DNA of 64,000 bases, from sequence record LC680884.1, one strand, 5' to 3'. Position numbers and translations under genes: made by a program. This document shows, one piece after another, positions 39,929 to 45,639 of this stretch. The notes under the pieces are model-generated. The model did not search any database. It saw nothing but the letters and a program-made list of their open reading frames with translations, and was not told the origin of the DNA. Every line of letters begins with the position of its first letter. Within the stretch, counting starts at the first letter, position 1.

Positions 39929-40112
39929 TTATCTTTTATTATTCAATTTCATGAGTTGCTAGAGAAATCATATGTTCTTTATTATAAGAGTCATATTCAT
40001 TTTCTATAATAAATTTTACTGAGAATATGTTTGACCTTTTTTAAGCGTACTTATATACATATATTAATTTCCCTCCAATATAATAAAAGAGAAGACTAAT
40101 AGTCTTCCCTAA

Positions 40113-42227
40113 TTAAATAGCGGTTGCTCCCAAAATAATCTCATCTTTATTTAATTTCTTAATAGTGTTACCAAATGCTGGACGGAGTAATACACTTACT
40201 TCATCAATGTCCATTCCAATAATACTAGTATTACTAATAATGGTTAAATCAGAATCTGGTTTAACAGAAACAATTCTCACAATTTCATCATTTTCTTTTG
40301 CTCTAATTCCAATTCGACCTTTACCACCACGGATTTGTTCAGGGAACTCAGAGATTTCAACTCGTTTTCCCAATCCTTTTTTACTGATAAAGAAAGCATG
40401 TGATACTTCTTCTGTTACTAGATCAATACCAGCAATATAATCTCCTTTATTGATAATAGAATTGTCAAAAATGTTAGAACCAAATGTAGGGCGAAGAACT
40501 ACTGGGATAGAGTCAAGTGACATATTAATTGTTGCTCCTGTATTAGTGCAAGCAATAATAGAATTCTTTCCTTTCATATCTACTTTTTGAGCAAAGATAA
40601 CACTATCACCATCATTTAATTTAGTTGCAATAATACCAGATTGATAAATATTCTTAAATTCTGCTACATCTACTAGTTTAATTTTATTCAATCTAGTACC
40701 AATTGCAATTTTGATATTTTCATTATTCATCTCATCATCTGTCATTGCAAGGACATTTGTTAGAGTTTCATCTTTAATAATACCATTTAGATTATAGCCA
40801 TATGATTGGATTTCACAACCTTCAATCTCATAAGCTTTTCTTGAATAAACTTTTCCTGCATTTGTAAAAATAAGAATATTATCCTTATTATTTGCATTAA
40901 AAATAGTAATTGGATTATCATCAGATTTAATCTTACCAATACTATTTCCTTTACCACCACGTTTTTGAACTTTGATAGTATTATTTAATTTCTTAATATA
41001 ACGATTAGTACAAATGAAAGTATGGTTGCTGTCAATAATAAGATTTTCTTTATTATTAATATCTTCTATATTTAAATCTAGAACAGTTGTTTTTCGTTCA
41101 CAACCAAACTTTTTCTTAGCATTTTCAAGTTCAGAGATAATATACTCATTAATCTTATTATCATCTTTAAAGTATAATACCGTATCGTTATATTTCTTTT
41201 CTAAGTCTTTTCTTTCTTTTTTCAATTGATCAATTTCAATATTGTTAATACGATATAATTTCATATTTACAATATATTCAGCTTGATCTTCTTCAATTTT
41301 AAATTCTTTTACAATAGTTTCAACCATTTGTGATCTACTTTTACTAGTTCTGATAATATCTAACAAACGATCTAGATTAGTACCTAACGCAGTAAGTAAC
41401 CCATCAATAATATGAATTCTCTTCTTAGCATCTTTAAGATCATTTGTAAATAAACGTCTAAGAGTAACAATACGGAAATTTAACCATTCTGCAACAATTT
41501 GGTTGACGTTAGTAAAGTTAATAAACTTCTTGTCTATTACTCCATTAAAGTCCATTGGTAGGGTAAATTGACAATTAGTATATTTATATAATTGGTTTTC
41601 AATTAAATCTAGATCATAACCTTTCTTTACTTCAATAATAATATTAATTTTACCTTTTTCTGAAAGGTTCTTAATATTTTTAATTCCTTCAATCTTCTTA
41701 GGAATTTTATTACCTTTCTCAATTCTATCATTAGCTACATTTTGAATAGATTCAATTAGTTTATCAGATGTTTTTAGATATGGGATCTCGCTAATAACTA
41801 ATTCATGTTTCTTTTCATTTTTGGTAATTCTTGCTCTAATAATAGCTTTTGATTTACCAGTAGTATATGCTTCTTCTACTTGCCTTTTATTAATAATTAC
41901 TCCACCAGTTGGGTAATCTGGTAGTAACTTGATCTGATAATTATTATCTTTAATATACTTAATAGTCTCATCAATAACTTCATTAATATTATGTGGATGT
42001 TGGTTGGTTGCATAACCAGCAGCAATACCGAGACTACCATTAACTAATATCATTGGAAGAATAGAAGGTAATACTTTTGGCTCTTCTAAAGTATTATCAA
42101 AGTTTGGAACAAAATCAACAATGTTTTTATTAATATTTGAAAGTAAAACCTCTTCTGCAAATTTATGGATTCTAGCTTCACTATAACGTTCAGCGGCGGC
42201 TGGATCCCCATACACACTTCCAAAGTT
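40113..42227 (-). CDS. gyrA: DNA gyrase subunit A, exon 3
   Basis: Starts NFGSVYGDPAAAERYSEAR (catalytic Tyr); GIAAGYATN..PH, PDYPTGG; CTD with GyrA-box QKRGGKG. Confidence 0.93.
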   Translation of the reverse strand, partial: NFGSVYGDPAAAERYSEARIHKFAEEVLLSNINKNIVDFVPNFDNTLEEPKVLPSILPMILVNGSLGIAAGYATNQHPHNINEVIDETIKYIKDNNYQIKLLPDYPTGGVIINKRQVEEAYTTGKSKAIIRARITKNEKKHELVISEIPYLKTSDKLIESIQNVANDRIEKGNKIPKKIEGIKNIKNLSEKGKINIIIEVKKGYDLDLIENQLYKYTNCQFTLPMDFNGVIDKKFINFTNVNQIVAEWLNFRIVTLRRLFTNDLKDAKKRIHIIDGLLTALGTNLDRLLDIIRTSKSRSQMVETIVKEFKIEEDQAEYIVNMKLYRINNIEIDQLKKERKDLEKKYNDTVLYFKDDNKINEYIISELENAKKKFGCERKTTVLDLNIEDINNKENLIIDSNHTFICTNRYIKKLNNTIKVQKRGGKGNSIGKIKSDDNPITIFNANNKDNILIFTNAGKVYSRKAYEIEGCEIQSYGYNLNGIIKDETLTNVLAMTDDEMNNENIKIAIGTRLNKIKLVDVAEFKNIYQSGIIATKLNDGDSVIFAQKVDMKGKNSIIACTNTGATINMSLDSIPVVLRPTFGSNIFDNSIINKGDYIAGIDLVTEEVSHAFFISKKGLGKRVEISEFPEQIRGGKGRIGIRAKENDEIVRIVSVKPDSDLTIISNTSIIGMDIDEVSVLLRPAFGNTIKKLNKDEIILGATAI

Positions 42228-42585
42228 CTAATAGTTATTAACCATAGGCTTTTTATCCTATGCTCTGGAGGTTTCCCTCATTTTCATCGATTGGTCATTT
42301 CCAATCCAGTATAGCATATCTTTTTATCCATGTATTTCACAATAGATGGATACTGGGGTCTCTTGGATACATTATATTCTTCATCTTGTGAAGTTTCAGC
42401 AATCTATGCGTTGCGCCTGAATGGACTATTACATCCATCCTTCGGACTCTGATCAGGATAGGCTATACCCTTCCAGCTTAATCCCCCAGTAATAATGATG
42501 TATGTTACCATACAAAACGGCATATCCTTTAACGAGCCTAATCTATTATATGACGGTATTCATATAATATTAAAGGATTTTACTT
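42228..42585 (-). mobile_element. ORF-less group I intron B in gyrA (358 nt)
   Basis: Exon ends GGT, intron ends ...TATTAG; P3 GGGG/CCCC, P AAGCTGG, Q ATCAGAG, R CAACGCATAG, S AAGATATGC. Confidence 0.88.
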
Positions 42586-42681
42586 ACCATGAGCATCAAT
42601 AAGGCTTTTATTGACATACCAAGGTTGATACATTTTTACTAGTGCTTCATATACGCTTGCATTTCCGTGGGGATGATATTC
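42586..42681 (-). CDS. gyrA: DNA gyrase subunit A, exon 2 (96 nt; not in ORF track)
   Basis: EYHPHGNASVYEALVKMYQPWYVNKSLIDAHG corresponds to YHPHGD..VY..LVRMAQ...LVDG.G. Confidence 0.93.
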
Positions 42682-43035
42682 CTGTTAGTTATTAACCATA
42701 GGCTTTTTATCCTATGCTCTGGAGGTTTCCCTCATTTTCATCAGTTGGTCATTTCCAACTCAGCATAGCATATCTTTTTAACCATGTATTTCACAATAGA
42801 CGGTTAATGGGGTCTCGTGGATACATTATATTCTTCATCTTGTGAAGTTTCAGTAATCTATGCGTTGCGCCTGAATAAATTATTACATTTATCCTTCGGA
42901 CTCTGATCAGGATAACTAAACCCTCCCAGCTTAATCCCCCATTAATAATCTTAAATGTTACCACTTAAGACGGCAAGAATTTCATTGCTAAGTTATATAC
43001 TCTATCATAATTGATAGGCAATGAAACTACTGTTT
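42682..43035 (-). mobile_element. ORF-less group I intron A in gyrA (354 nt)
   Basis: Exon ends GGT, intron ends ...TAACAG; same core as intron B; 57-bp exact shared block (42686-42742 = 42232-42288). Confidence 0.88.
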
Positions 43036-43254
43036 ACCAATAATGCTCCCCGTAATTTTTGCTGACTTAACATGCGGTTTATTTGATTCCCATTTATGTA
43101 CATGCATACCCCATAGAATTCTACGGTGAATAGGTTTTAATCCATCACGAGGATCTGGAATAGCACGTTCCTTTAAAACCTCATCATAATATTCTGTAGC
43201 ATTTTCAGTTTGAATAGTTTCATAATCTTTCTTAATAATTGCCATTTTCATCAT
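43036..43254 (-). CDS. gyrA: DNA gyrase subunit A, exon 1 (spliced product about 806-809 aa)
   Basis: RAIPDPRDGLKPIHRRIL..KSAKITGSIIG. Confidence 0.93.
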
Positions 43255-43392: not shown

Positions 43393-43839
43393 TTAAATCT
43401 CCTCCAATCCTGATAGTTTATAATTTGTATATACTTTCATCCTTTCTGAGTTATATGATAATAATATAACTTTATTTTTTAAATTATTCATAAGTTCTAA
43501 TCTATATTTATCATATTCATCTTTGATCAATATTTTAGTATTAGGAACAGTATAAAAAGGATGAGTACATGCTAACATTCTATCATAGAAATCCTCTGTA
43601 TATTTTATTTTATTATTCTTAATAGGTGGAATAATTTTTGATAATCTAAATTTATCATTGGTTTTATAGATAAACTCAATATACTCTTCTGCTAGAATTA
43701 CTTCATACAGAATTATTAAGTCAGTGACTTGATGATTATATTTAATACTCTTTGGTATTTTTGAATCAAATTTCATAACATCTTCAAAATCCCAATTAAT
43801 TAAATGCCTTAATCTATCTAATGTATTATTGTACTTCAT
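43393..43839 (-). CDS. paralog triplet C, N-domain-only member
   Basis: HLINW ... NKV.L...KVYTNY shared with the next two genes. Confidence 0.7.
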   Translation of the reverse strand: MKYNNTLDRLRHLINWDFEDVMKFDSKIPKSIKYNHQVTDLIILYEVILAEEYIEFIYKTNDKFRLSKIIPPIKNNKIKYTEDFYDRMLACTHPFYTVPNTKILIKDEYDKYRLELMNNLKNKVILLSYNSERMKVYTNYKLSGLEEI

Positions 43840-44728
43840 TATTTACTCCCTTCTTCTTAACCCATCCTTTACCATTGCATTTTTCACAGAATTCTTTTTC
43901 TATATAATAATTTCTTTCGTAACCTTTTCCATTACACTCCTTACATTTACATATTTCTGATCGTTTAACAATATTTTCAACTATTTTATCATTAAACTTT
44001 CTTTTACATTGATCACAATAGTATAAATCTTTATCCAGTGGATCCGTATTATGAAATATAGTGAATATTGGCGATGCGATATTTTCTTTCGCTTCTTTAT
44101 CTTGTTTCGTATAAAGATCAGTTTTTAAAATATCTTCATTACAGCAATGGCATTTTAATTTATTATTTTCCTTAATTAAATCTTCTAAACTATGATATTC
44201 TTTAAATTCAACTTGTATTGAGTGTTTAGTGCATAAATTGTGTCTATTGAATCTAGTTAATGAGTTTCTTGAACCACAGATCTCGCATATATTCTCTTCG
44301 AGAAAATCCTTAATCTTCACTCTTTCTCGCCTAATATCTAGGAATTCTTTTTCAGATATTTCGTAATTAGCATATACTTTTAACTTTTTAGAATCTCTTA
44401 AAATAGCTACTTTGTTATTTTTATTTTGTAGATATTTATTCCTATAATCTAAATATTCATCTCTTTTTAGACAATTAACATACTTATAATAATAAGTAAT
44501 AGTTCTTTCTTGTATTTCTTTTTTTAATTCATTAGAAAGATAAGGTTTCCCATATTTAATTCCGACAGGTATTTTAAATGTAATAAAATTATTTTTTCGT
44601 TTATAAACTAATTCTACATAACCATCAGTAAAAATAATTTCATAAGTTTTATCGAAATGAGGAAGACATGAATCCTCAAATCTAATCATTCCTGCTAATG
44701 ACCATTCAATTAAATGTAAATCCCTCAT
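43826..44728 (-). CDS. paralog triplet C, multi-Zn-finger protein with DnaJ-type CxxCxGxG repeats
   Basis: CEIC..CTKH, CHCC..CDQC, CKECNGKG..CEKCNGKG. Confidence 0.75.
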   Translation of the reverse strand: MRDLHLIEWSLAGMIRFEDSCLPHFDKTYEIIFTDGYVELVYKRKNNFITFKIPVGIKYGKPYLSNELKKEIQERTITYYYKYVNCLKRDEYLDYRNKYLQNKNNKVAILRDSKKLKVYANYEISEKEFLDIRRERVKIKDFLEENICEICGSRNSLTRFNRHNLCTKHSIQVEFKEYHSLEDLIKENNKLKCHCCNEDILKTDLYTKQDKEAKENIASPIFTIFHNTDPLDKDLYYCDQCKRKFNDKIVENIVKRSEICKCKECNGKGYERNYYIEKEFCEKCNGKGWVKKKGVNNEVQ

Positions 44729-45639
44729 TTACTGTTCTCCTTCTTAATCCAACCTGTTCCTTGACAATAAGCACAATCTACTTTATAGAGTTTGTAATCC
44801 CTAATATATCCTTGTCCACGACAGTTTTCACATCTATGTCCATGCTGATTTAATAAATTTTTTTCTATATAGCCATGAATGACGCAATTATTGCATACTT
44901 TTGTATCATCATATAATAAATAAAATTGATCAGTGTATATAGATGTGAATAAACTTCCTTTACATACATCACAGGTAGGTTTAGATCCAAGATTAATTTT
45001 ATTTTTTCCATTATATGATAAAATTTGGTTATTTATTATACTTTTATTCCTATATAATTCTTTAACTCTATGATCATCACAATAATAATAACTTTTACCT
45101 ATACCGAATCTATTTTTATCAGATATATTATTAGATCTTTTACCACACACATCACATAATTTTTTAGATTCATAAAAATCATGATTAGAAATTAGATGTT
45201 TTTTAGCACGATCTATTTCTTCATCAGAAATGTGATTTGTCTGTAACACAATATTAGATGTATCTATAACAACTGTAACTTCATTATTCCCATTATTTAA
45301 AAGTATTTCTTTATATTTATTATATTCATCTTGAGTTTTTAAATTATAACTATTCATAAAATTATTTACTATCATATCCATTGCATCTTTACTAAACTTG
45401 GCTTCTCTATCAGATAAAAGAGGGAGACTGTTTTTGGATATATTATATGTATCATTAGTTAATTTTTGTACTACTTGGATTCCAGATTCAGTATAAATTG
45501 TTTCAATGTGTACTTTCTGATTATTTACTCTATTTGATAGTATATCTAATATTTTATCATGTGTTTTAAGAACTGTATGGATATCCCATTTAATTAGGTG
45601 TATATTTTTAAAAGATTTTGTCATTAGCATAATTATCAC
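44725..45639 (-). CDS. paralog triplet C, multi-Zn-finger protein with DnaJ-type CxxCxGxG repeats
   Basis: CDVC..CDDH, CDVC..CNNC, CENCRGQG..CAYCQGTG. Confidence 0.75.
   Translation of the reverse strand: MIIMLMTKSFKNIHLIKWDIHTVLKTHDKILDILSNRVNNQKVHIETIYTESGIQVVQKLTNDTYNISKNSLPLLSDREAKFSKDAMDMIVNNFMNSYNLKTQDEYNKYKEILLNNGNNEVTVVIDTSNIVLQTNHISDEEIDRAKKHLISNHDFYESKKLCDVCGKRSNNISDKNRFGIGKSYYYCDDHRVKELYRNKSIINNQILSYNGKNKINLGSKPTCDVCKGSLFTSIYTDQFYLLYDDTKVCNNCVIHGYIEKNLLNQHGHRCENCRGQGYIRDYKLYKVDCAYCQGTGWIKKENSK

Follow-up and report, generated by a model that had tools for sequence, protein, structure and literature searches.

Two group I introns in the gyrA gene of Bacillus phage PBS1 and their probable origin from mobile LAGLIDADG introns

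Group I introns in conserved phage genes of DNA metabolism are textbook knowledge, and the closest described counterparts of the locus studied here are the self-splicing subgroup IA introns that interrupt such genes in T4 (td, nrdB, nrdD), Twort and SPO1. A comparable arrangement is found in Twort, where one phage gene holds a number of similar group I introns with short exons between them; the host gene is a different one, and exon skipping has been reported for Twort. Nearer still is phage AR9, whose gene-interrupting sequences were, reportedly by Lavysh in 2016, found to be self-splicing. In the AR9 record (GenBank KU878088), gene g044 (DNA gyrase subunit A), an early gene, is already annotated as a three-piece join. 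Its product gp044 was described as 'disrupted by two intron sequences', with reference to experimentally determined mature mRNAs (Korn et al.). In related jumbo phages, introns or inteins have been reported in gyrA and gyrB, and MarsHill-like phages have an intein in place of such introns.

Here, we analysed a window of 64,000 nt from record LC680884, the DNA of Bacillus phage PBS1, in which gyrA (43254-40113) and all features given below are on the minus strand. The locus is 99.7% identical to that of AR9, the AR9 join covers the identical 3142-nt span, and nothing substantive distinguishes the two genes. A search for related loci with a single piece of GyrA gave no match other than AR9. The two introns are thus already known from AR9 and are nothing out of the ordinary among mobile introns of phages; since they are annotated and cited there, they carry little weight as a discovery. 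The PBS1 records MF360957 and LC680884, on the other hand, leave the join unannotated and mis-annotate gyrA as fragments and spurious 'hypothetical proteins'. New in this work are the recognition of intron 1 as an endonuclease-deletion derivative, the absences of intron 2 among relatives, a co-conversion-like substitution cluster and a LAGLIDADG intron at the second site in the metagenomic phage contig L054.

The gene is interrupted by inserts of 354 nt (intron 1, 43035-42682) and 358 nt (intron 2, 42585-42228), which surround an exon of only 96 nt. A first-pass annotation had read the locus in this way, as a pair of ORF-less group I introns, and all of its coordinates proved correct. Exon 1 (43036-43254; 219 nt, 73 codons from the first ATG, ending in ATT GGT) covers positions 1-42 of Pfam domain PF00521 (DNA_topoisoIV; E = 1.4e-13), exon 2 (42586-42681; 32 codons, GAATAT...CATGGT, i.e. 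EYHPHG...DAHG) covers positions 44-75, and exon 3 (40113-42227; 704 codons plus stop) covers positions 76-432 (E = 5e-84), so that the domain is tiled contiguously by the three exons. Exon 3 further contains the active-site tyrosine (motif AAERY) and the C-terminal beta-propeller; this propeller, with its PF03989 repeats, and the DNA_topoisoIV domain identify the product as GyrA. The small middle exon corresponds to residues 76-107 of E. coli GyrA (PDB GyrA chains, e.g. 6rks_A residues 76-107) and covers helix alpha4 and the quinolone-resistance-determining region. Both insertion sites follow conserved glycine GGT codons, G75/K76 at site 1 and G107/N108 at site 2 in E. coli numbering. Both introns are in phase 0, T is the last base of both upstream exons and G the last base of both introns. 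Removal of the inserts yields a coding sequence of 2430 nt (809 codons plus stop) that reads ...SIIG/EYHPHG...DAHG/NFGSVYGDPAAAERY across the junctions (slashes). Of these predicted junctions, the second is confirmed to the base by the intron-2-less allele of phage Goe21, and the first by the uninterrupted IG-x-YHPHG in L054 as well as by the Pfam tiling. Read-through would end 2 codons after exon 1 and 1 codon after exon 2, and the longest open frame in either insert is at most 57 codons. Directly 3' of the gyrA stop codon, a hairpin with a run of T after it resembles a terminator (40088-40110).

Do the inserts have the architecture of group I introns? We examined an alignment of 18 family members with a structure of 15 helices and 66 pairs. 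In this alignment 93.7% of the cells are paired, compensatory changes occur at 52 of the 66 pairs, and the covariation score reaches 0.626; shuffled controls score 0.188, and sliding the partners gives no more than 0.11. The fold that covariation strongly backs comprises P1, whose splice-site pair is U·G, P2 to P9.2 with the canonical core order P3-P9 and the P3/P7 pseudoknot, a P7.1 extension and a terminal G. In both introns the guide U(U)GCCG pairs with UGGU/A(A), with the U·G wobble at the 5' splice site. ORF-less relatives form the same P1 hairpin from GGU/RA, 7-9 nt and UUGCC, and in a variant class of relatives GCU/AA is paired with UUGGCG, an exon-guide covariation. The omega G is found at 42682 and 42228, and likewise in Goe21, BpSp, phiR1-37 and L054. 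P7.1/P7.2 helices between P7 and P3' (helices 8-10, columns 196-247), with covariation at all three outer pairs, mark the introns as subgroup IA-like, an assignment that does not distinguish IA2 from other IA branches. These extra helices, the GNRA loops and a core layout of AACG-P7 plus AGAUA-P7' (compare T4 td) are shared with the phage IA introns. As in the phage IA introns, the endonuclease ORF is optional and lies in a peripheral loop; in the present family, however, it is a LAGLIDADG ORF in the P1 loop instead of GIY-YIG or HNH, and the P9-P9.2 3' domain is highly conserved.

Along intron 1, which starts with AAACAG and ends in AACAG, we assigned the L1 hairpin (about 43026-42977), the guide sequence UUGCCG (42976-42971), P2 with a GUAA loop (42970-42949), J6/7 with the 5' strand of P7 (42868-42858), J8/7 with its 3' strand (42777-42768), P9.1 with a GAAA loop (42733-42722) and the terminal G. 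The corresponding elements of intron 2, which starts with AAGTAA, are the guide sequence AUGCCG (42523-42518), P2 (42514-42499), J6/7 and P7 5' (42414-42404), J8/7 and P7 3' (42323-42314), P9.1 (42279-42268) and the terminal G. Sigma-70-like promoter matches within both introns fall on the conserved ribozyme motif GAAUAUAAU and were rejected as promoters.

Rfam RF00028 did not recognise the introns, with no match at the locus at E up to 10, and at the gathering score Rfam returned no intron match in the whole window. Two weak Rfam matches (PK-repZ, snoZ40) were taken as chance. As a control, RF00028 scores T4 td at 40 bits and nrdB at 36 bits, and thus detects them though they lie under its cut-off of 50. 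Applied to the loci of 19 relatives, Rfam found other introns only and none of the present family. Our own covariance model (R1) gave no match to the proven T4 introns and only a weak one (16 bits, E = 0.19) to an RF00028-recognised intron in L060. Sequence likeness to the phage IA introns is too low for either approach to link them, and this lack of detectable homology to curated or proven group I introns (RF00028; T4 td and nrdB) weakens the claim of homology and leaves the architectural claim in place. The family itself is large: its 26-nt 3' motif occurs exactly in more than 107 IMG/VR contigs, and in isolated phages members also interrupt terL and a major tail protein gene. RF00028 misses a phage intron family of more than 100 members, so that Rfam-based statements of 'no introns' in jumbo phages are unreliable.

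How alike are the two introns? They share the exact 57-nt block noticed at the outset (42742-42686 identical to 42288-42232, offset 454). To call them near-identical is nevertheless an overstatement: from the guide sequence to the 3' end 32 of 295 columns differ (89.5% identity), whereas the first ~60 nt cannot be aligned and the L1 segments are unrelated. The P7.1 segment, in which the Goe21 intron differs, is more alike still (94.7% identity). Such likeness goes far beyond chance, with nhmmer E values of 1e-96 and 3e-94 and covariance-model scores of 159.8 and 158.7 bits; neither method found a further copy in the window. The 32 differences include 8 double compensatory changes, 3 that preserve a pair and 1 that breaks one, and the modelled pairs form almost completely (65/66 in intron 1, 64/66 in intron 2). 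From this we infer that both ribozymes have been held functional by selection.

Members of this intron family also occupy the same part of gyrA in Goe21, BpSp, phiR1-37 and L054, and the single-intron alleles that had been suggested as a comparison exist at both sites. Goe21 and phiR1-37 have the site-1 intron only, with a LAGLIDADG ORF; BpSp has an ORF-less intron at site 1 only; intron 2 is missing from all three. L054, in turn, lacks an intron at site 1 and has, precisely at site 2 (DWHG/NNGN), an intron with a LAGLIDADG ORF. The intron ORFs of Goe21, phiR1-37 and L054 match LAGLIDADG_3, whereas neither PBS1 intron encodes an endonuclease. In L060 and L100, the same family occupies a third site, after HPHG. 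With three gyrA sites occupied in several phages, and with the gyrA and gyrB insertions reported in related jumbo phages, the view of gyrA as an unusual target for group I introns is weak. Intron 1 equals the Goe21 intron minus a 932-nt endonuclease segment; its first 24 nt and the final portion of its L1 are also those of Goe21. The bases around the guide, ATGCCGTT, and the 3' ATTAG are common to intron 2 and the L054 intron, but the core of intron 2 is only 74% identical to that of L054, compared with the 89.5% to intron 1, and the pattern of similarity is mosaic. Beside intron 2, in exon 3 directly 3' of it (42215-42228) and at the last base of exon 2 (42586), 8 substitutions in 14 positions separate PBS1 from Goe21; they include the switch of a serine codon (TCA-to-AGT). 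Exons 2 and 3 have 32 mismatches between PBS1 and Goe21, of which 8 lie at -1 to +12 of site 2, where the intron-2-less BpSp allele resembles Goe21. The cluster looks like a co-conversion tract.

We consider it highly likely that gyrA, an early gene of PBS1, contains two independent self-splicing group I (IA-like) introns of mobile LAGLIDADG-intron origin, whose endonucleases were lost and whose ribozymes were kept by selection. By the established group I mechanism, each intron RNA would fold into a group I core in which P1 arises from pairing between the last exon bases, UGGU, and the guide (UUGCCG or AUGCCG), the splice site being marked by a U·G wobble. The first attack, on the 5' splice site, would come from an external guanosine, and the freed 3'-OH of the exon would then attack after the terminal G and ligate the exons; the 809-aa GyrA would require splicing of both introns. 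Intron 1 would descend from a mobile intron with a double-motif LAGLIDADG homing endonuclease in the P1 loop, a form that appears to persist in Goe21 and phiR1-37, and its endonuclease would have been lost in PBS1/AR9 by a clean deletion of ~0.9 kb. Intron 2 would be a paralogue at a second homing site. Its most likely route into the PBS1/AR9/Internexus lineage is gene conversion driven by an endonuclease, which would have brought along a little of the adjoining donor exon; its own endonuclease was presumably lost thereafter.

The origin of intron 2 can also be read differently. The intron could first have been copied from site 1 in a close relative, with gene conversion as the second step; this is possible because the core of intron 2 is nearer to intron 1 than to L054 and the pattern is mosaic. 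The recent local duplication without an encoded endonuclease proposed in the first-pass annotation is supported only in part. In its favour, the introns are paralogous and ORF-less. Against it stand 32 core differences that include eight compensatory pair changes, the unrelated L1 segments, intron 1 as a derivative by endonuclease-gene (HEG) deletion, the LAGLIDADG-bearing site 2 of L054 and the co-conversion-like exon tract. Such a local duplication could have taken place in the PBS1 lineage at the RNA level: the RNA of intron 1 would have inserted itself by reverse splicing at the UGGU close by in the gyrA transcript, with reverse transcription and recombination thereafter. UGGU indeed ends both sites, GCCG occurs in both guide sequences, the cores are similar, most of all in the P7.1 segment, and neither intron has an ORF. 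Yet the guide and its GGU target are family-wide, and thus the common site motif is not specific; the divergent L1 segments and the LAGLIDADG-encoding intron at site 2 in L054 also speak against this route, and a tract of eight substitutions with a three-base switch of a serine codon would not be expected from it. We therefore regard RNA-level transposition as a possible but rather unlikely competitor of the endonuclease-driven entry.

A different question is whether the inserts are spliced as proposed. That gyrA is decayed or split, or that the gaps are crossed in another way, we hold to be scarcely credible, although no Rfam intron model was found at the locus and the PBS1 GenBank records annotate separate ORFs. 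An intein is ruled out by multiple stops in every frame of the inserts. Group II introns are marked by domains V/VI, a GUGYG 5' end and a length of about 0.6 kb or more; here, Rfam gives no group II match, and the inserts begin with AAACAG and AAGUAA and measure only 354 and 358 nt. Translational bypass, as in T4 gene 60, was considered and rejected. The covariation-supported group I fold of the inserts, a 32-codon middle exon that lacks a start codon and cannot be expressed alone, and the introns described in the AR9 annotation and literature all argue for splicing. Given splicing, the twin introns could form a programmed switch in which exon 1 is joined to exon 3, yielding a GyrA without residues 76-107 that would regulate or poison gyrase. 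Skipping of exon 2 is mechanistically conceivable because both guides bind the same UGGU: the four UGGU/GCCG base pairs are open to exon 1 with one guide as with the other, both introns are in phase 0, and skipping among the three similar group I introns of Twort offers a precedent. However, intron 2 is dispensable for gyrA function, since it is missing in the close relatives Goe21 and BpSp, and the compensatory differences lower the folding of hybrids (57-61 of 66 pairs, compared with 64-65 for cognate introns). We thus find a programmed switch very improbable, and the 'control point' suggested earlier is speculation. If it were true, a fraction of transcripts would lack the 32-codon exon for the DNA-binding, quinolone-target helix, the GyrA variant would modulate or poison gyrase during infection, and the twin introns would be a functional splicing switch instead of two passengers.

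Among Takahashivirus isolates, three natural alleles of gyrA are available: endonuclease-plus at site 1 only, ORF-less at site 1 only, and ORF-less at sites 1 and 2. With them, homing, the loss of endonucleases and co-conversion could readily be studied in the laboratory in jumbo phages with uracil-DNA.

Reading the minus strand and rebuilding the pieces by script confirmed every coordinate proposed for the split gyrA gene in the first-pass annotation: exon 1 (43254-43036, 219 nt, ending in ATTGGT), intron 1 (43035-42682, 354 nt, AAACAG...AACAG), exon 2 (42681-42586, 96 nt, GAATAT...CATGGT), intron 2 (42585-42228, 358 nt, AAGTAA...ATTAG) and exon 3 (42227-40113, 2115 nt, starting with AAC TTT). 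Removal of both inserts restores a full GyrA, expected at about 806-809 amino acids and found to comprise 809 codons without an internal stop, with the junctions IIG/EYHPHG and DAHG/NFGS. Both introns lie in phase 0, read-through into intron 1 or intron 2 ends at a stop after 2 or 1 codons, respectively, and the longest stop-free stretch within either insert is 57 codons, so that both are indeed ORF-less. The exons match positions 1-42, 44-75 and 76-432 of the Pfam DNA_topoisoIV profile; since these adjoin, splicing restores a contiguous domain. Exon 2 aligns with full-length GyrA chains (875 aa, e.g. 6rks_A) over residues 76-107, the helix alpha4 and quinolone-resistance region. By eye, and with the E. 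coli numbering implied by the PDB alignment, exon 2 (EYHPHGNASVYEAL) has Ala at the equivalent of Ser83 and Glu at that of Asp87, the two sites on which the quinolone sensitivity of bacterial gyrases depends. Two adjoining ORFs, 300 and 304 aa long, are found upstream of gyrA at 43826-45639; they are paralogues whose C-termini are rich in CxxC, and the AR9 annotation names them 'Zn finger protein of DnaJ family'.

The two-intron arrangement is already known from AR9. The abstract of the AR9 genome paper is said to describe the interrupting sequences as self-splicing introns of groups I and II. Over the 3.4 kb that surround the introns, the sequence matches Bacillus phage PBS1 (MF360957, LC680884) at 100% identity, AR9 at 99.7%, vB_BspM_Internexus at 99.1% and vB_BsuM-Goe21, split over four pieces, at 97.4%. 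In the AR9 record, the coding sequence of g044, 'DNA gyrase subunit A', is a join of three pieces that together span 3142 nt, equal in length to the span found here. Korn et al., citing the AR9 genome paper, describe GyrA of AR9 as 'disrupted by two intron sequences' and mention mature mRNAs of AR9 that had been determined by experiment. The AR9 record alone has the three-piece join, and the PBS1 records (MF360957, NC_043027, LC680884) carry no spliced gyrA join at 42228-43254 and give the exon fragments as separate entries. In MF360957, two fragments named 'topoisomerase IV subunit A' enclose hypothetical proteins 233 and 234, the latter overlying intron 2; in LC680884, the name gyrA is given to exon 3 alone, and exon 1 is a hypothetical protein. 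What this analysis adds is the comparison of alleles, the structure at the level of the intron family and a blind spot of Rfam.

Are the inserts group I introns? The Rfam group I model RF00028 found no match at either PBS1 intron, even at E up to 10, nor at family members in other contigs, though it detects other introns in those contigs. The T4 td and nrdB introns, proven cases that served as a control, reach only 40.3 and 35.7 bits, under the gathering score of 50. A 2025 survey describes phage 'IA2' introns as heterogeneous and Rfam/GISSD-based detection as limiting, and a jumbo-phage paper reports 'no introns' by Rfam. We wrote out a group I structure on an alignment of 18 diverse family members, comprising P2, P3, P4, P5, P6, P6a, P7 pseudoknotted with P3, a P7.1 extension, P8, P9.0, P9, P9.1 and P9.2, with GNRA loops at L2 (GUAA) and L9.1 (GAAA). 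Across the 18 sequences, 93.7% of cells are paired and 52 of the 66 pairs show compensatory changes; the covariation score of 0.626 compares with 0.188 for shuffles and at most 0.11 with the 3' partners slid. In P1 of both PBS1 introns, U(U)GCCG is the pairing partner of the exon end UGGU and the first intron A(s), and the splice site thereby falls at a U·G wobble. ORF-less relatives have a compact P1 (GGU/RA, 7-9 nt, then UUGCC), and variant relatives pair GCU/AA with UUGGCG, an exon-guide covariation. All family members end in G. On this modelled structure, the inserts are built like group I introns of the subgroup IA type, which supports the earlier proposal of group I introns; the case for membership is made by architecture and covariation, since homology to curated models is not detectable. 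A covariance model built from the P7-P9.1 half gives the PBS1 introns scores of 159.8 and 158.7 bits; it detects no other copy in the window, has no match in the T4 introns and touches an RF00028-recognised intron of contig L060 weakly (16 bits, E = 0.19).

The comparison of alleles revealed single-intron versions of gyrA. Goe21 carries only intron 1, of 1286 nt, with a 335-codon ORF in the P1 loop that has two LAGLIDADG motifs (Pfam LAGLIDADG_3 and Hom_end below cutoff). The first 24 nt and the end of L1 are common to this intron and PBS1 intron 1, which is thus a clean deletion derivative of a Goe21-type intron. Exons 2 and 3 of Goe21 are contiguous (...DAHG NFGSMYGDP...), confirming the second junction to the base. 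Site 1 alone is also occupied in BpSp, by an ORF-less intron, and in phiR1-37, by one with a LAGLIDADG ORF. The metagenomic contig L054 lacks an intron at site 1 and holds a family member exactly at site 2 (DWHG/NNGNITGD) with a LAGLIDADG_3 ORF in L1; two of its features recur in PBS1 intron 2 and are different in all site-1 introns, namely the guide-flanking bases (ATGCCGTT) and ATTAG at the 3' terminus. Contigs L060 and L100 have family introns at a third gyrA site, after HPHG. The endonuclease genes of Goe21 (L003:4087-5094) and phiR1-37 (L004:1551-2486), Bacillus and Yersinia jumbo phages of 251 and 262 kb, are homologous; both lie in the P1 loop of the site-1 intron, and their ORF ends run into the ribozyme guide sequence.

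How did intron 2 arise? Introns 1 and 2 are 89.5% identical from the internal guide sequence to the 3' end, including the 57-nt exact block at offset 454 (42742-42686 and 42288-42232), and unrelated over the first ~60 nt; the core of intron 2 is only 74% identical to L054, which counts against a distant donor. Exons 2 and 3 differ from Goe21 at 32 of 2211 positions, eight of them within -1 to +12 of site 2, including TCA-to-AGT with the serine kept, and the remaining 95 nt of exon 2 show no mismatch. Because the BpSp allele, which lacks intron 2, resembles Goe21 around this site, the PBS1 flank is the derived state. From these sequences, the cluster looks like the trace expected of donor-exon co-conversion in endonuclease-driven homing; reverse splicing would not be expected to leave such a cluster. 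The pattern is also mosaic: in the P7.1 segment the PBS1 introns agree at 94.7%, versus 75-77% with Goe21, and in P3-P6 the closest relative of intron 2 is Goe21 intron 1. Most economically, a site-1 intron would have been duplicated into site 2 in some member of this phage group and spread by homing, with later endonuclease loss and some gene conversion between the copies. The earlier proposal of a recent local duplication without an endonuclease would thus be partly right as to local duplication, the event probably being neither very recent nor endonuclease-free in origin.

Of the 32 core columns that differ between the two introns, 20 lie in helices, where eight pairs changed on both sides and three on one side remain paired and one is broken. 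Intron 1 forms 65 and intron 2 64 of the 66 modelled pairs. The pair-preserving changes and these counts argue that both are maintained as working ribozymes. Hybrid pairings between the copies would form fewer pairs (57-61 of 66). The twin introns had also been proposed as a splicing control point. Exon 1 ends in UGGU, as does exon 2, and the same four exon pairs can form with either guide; skipping of exon 2 is therefore chemically conceivable, and exon skipping has been reported in Twort for three similar introns. Close relatives manage without intron 2. A regulatory role is very improbable in our estimate; the arrangement is what the traffic of mobile introns through phage genes normally produces. 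Sigma-70-like promoter matches (CTGAAA-17-TATAAT) at the same place in both introns (42825-42853, 42371-42399) are probably spurious, since they fall on the ribozyme segment UGAAAC...GAAUAUAAU, which is conserved.

A 26-nt motif of the 3' domain (GATGAAAATGAGGGAAACCTCCAGAG) occurs exactly in >107 IMG/VR viral contigs and marks a phage group I intron family of >100 members (L008-L114, for example L009:2384-2676) with a nearly invariant P9-P9.2 domain. By blastn, relatives of the PBS1 introns are found in phiR1-37, BpSp, a crAss-like phage, a Clostridium phage, where terL is split, and a Staphylococcus-group phage, where a major tail protein gene is split. At the 5' junctions of L009, L090, L040, L066 and L058 and in the window (42971-42976, 42518-42523), the guide is nearly constant (UUGCCG) across different genes and insertion always follows a GGT glycine codon. 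Judged from these junctions, site choice appears to be linked to an invariable need for GGU at the RNA level; this could be a sign that reverse splicing guides the spread of the family. The 240-kb viral contig L009 has three intron signals in about 1 kb (1742-2676), with family-model matches at 1742-1896 and 2495-2641 and an RF00028 match between them (1967-2217), which suggests a further gene invaded several times, its exons very short.
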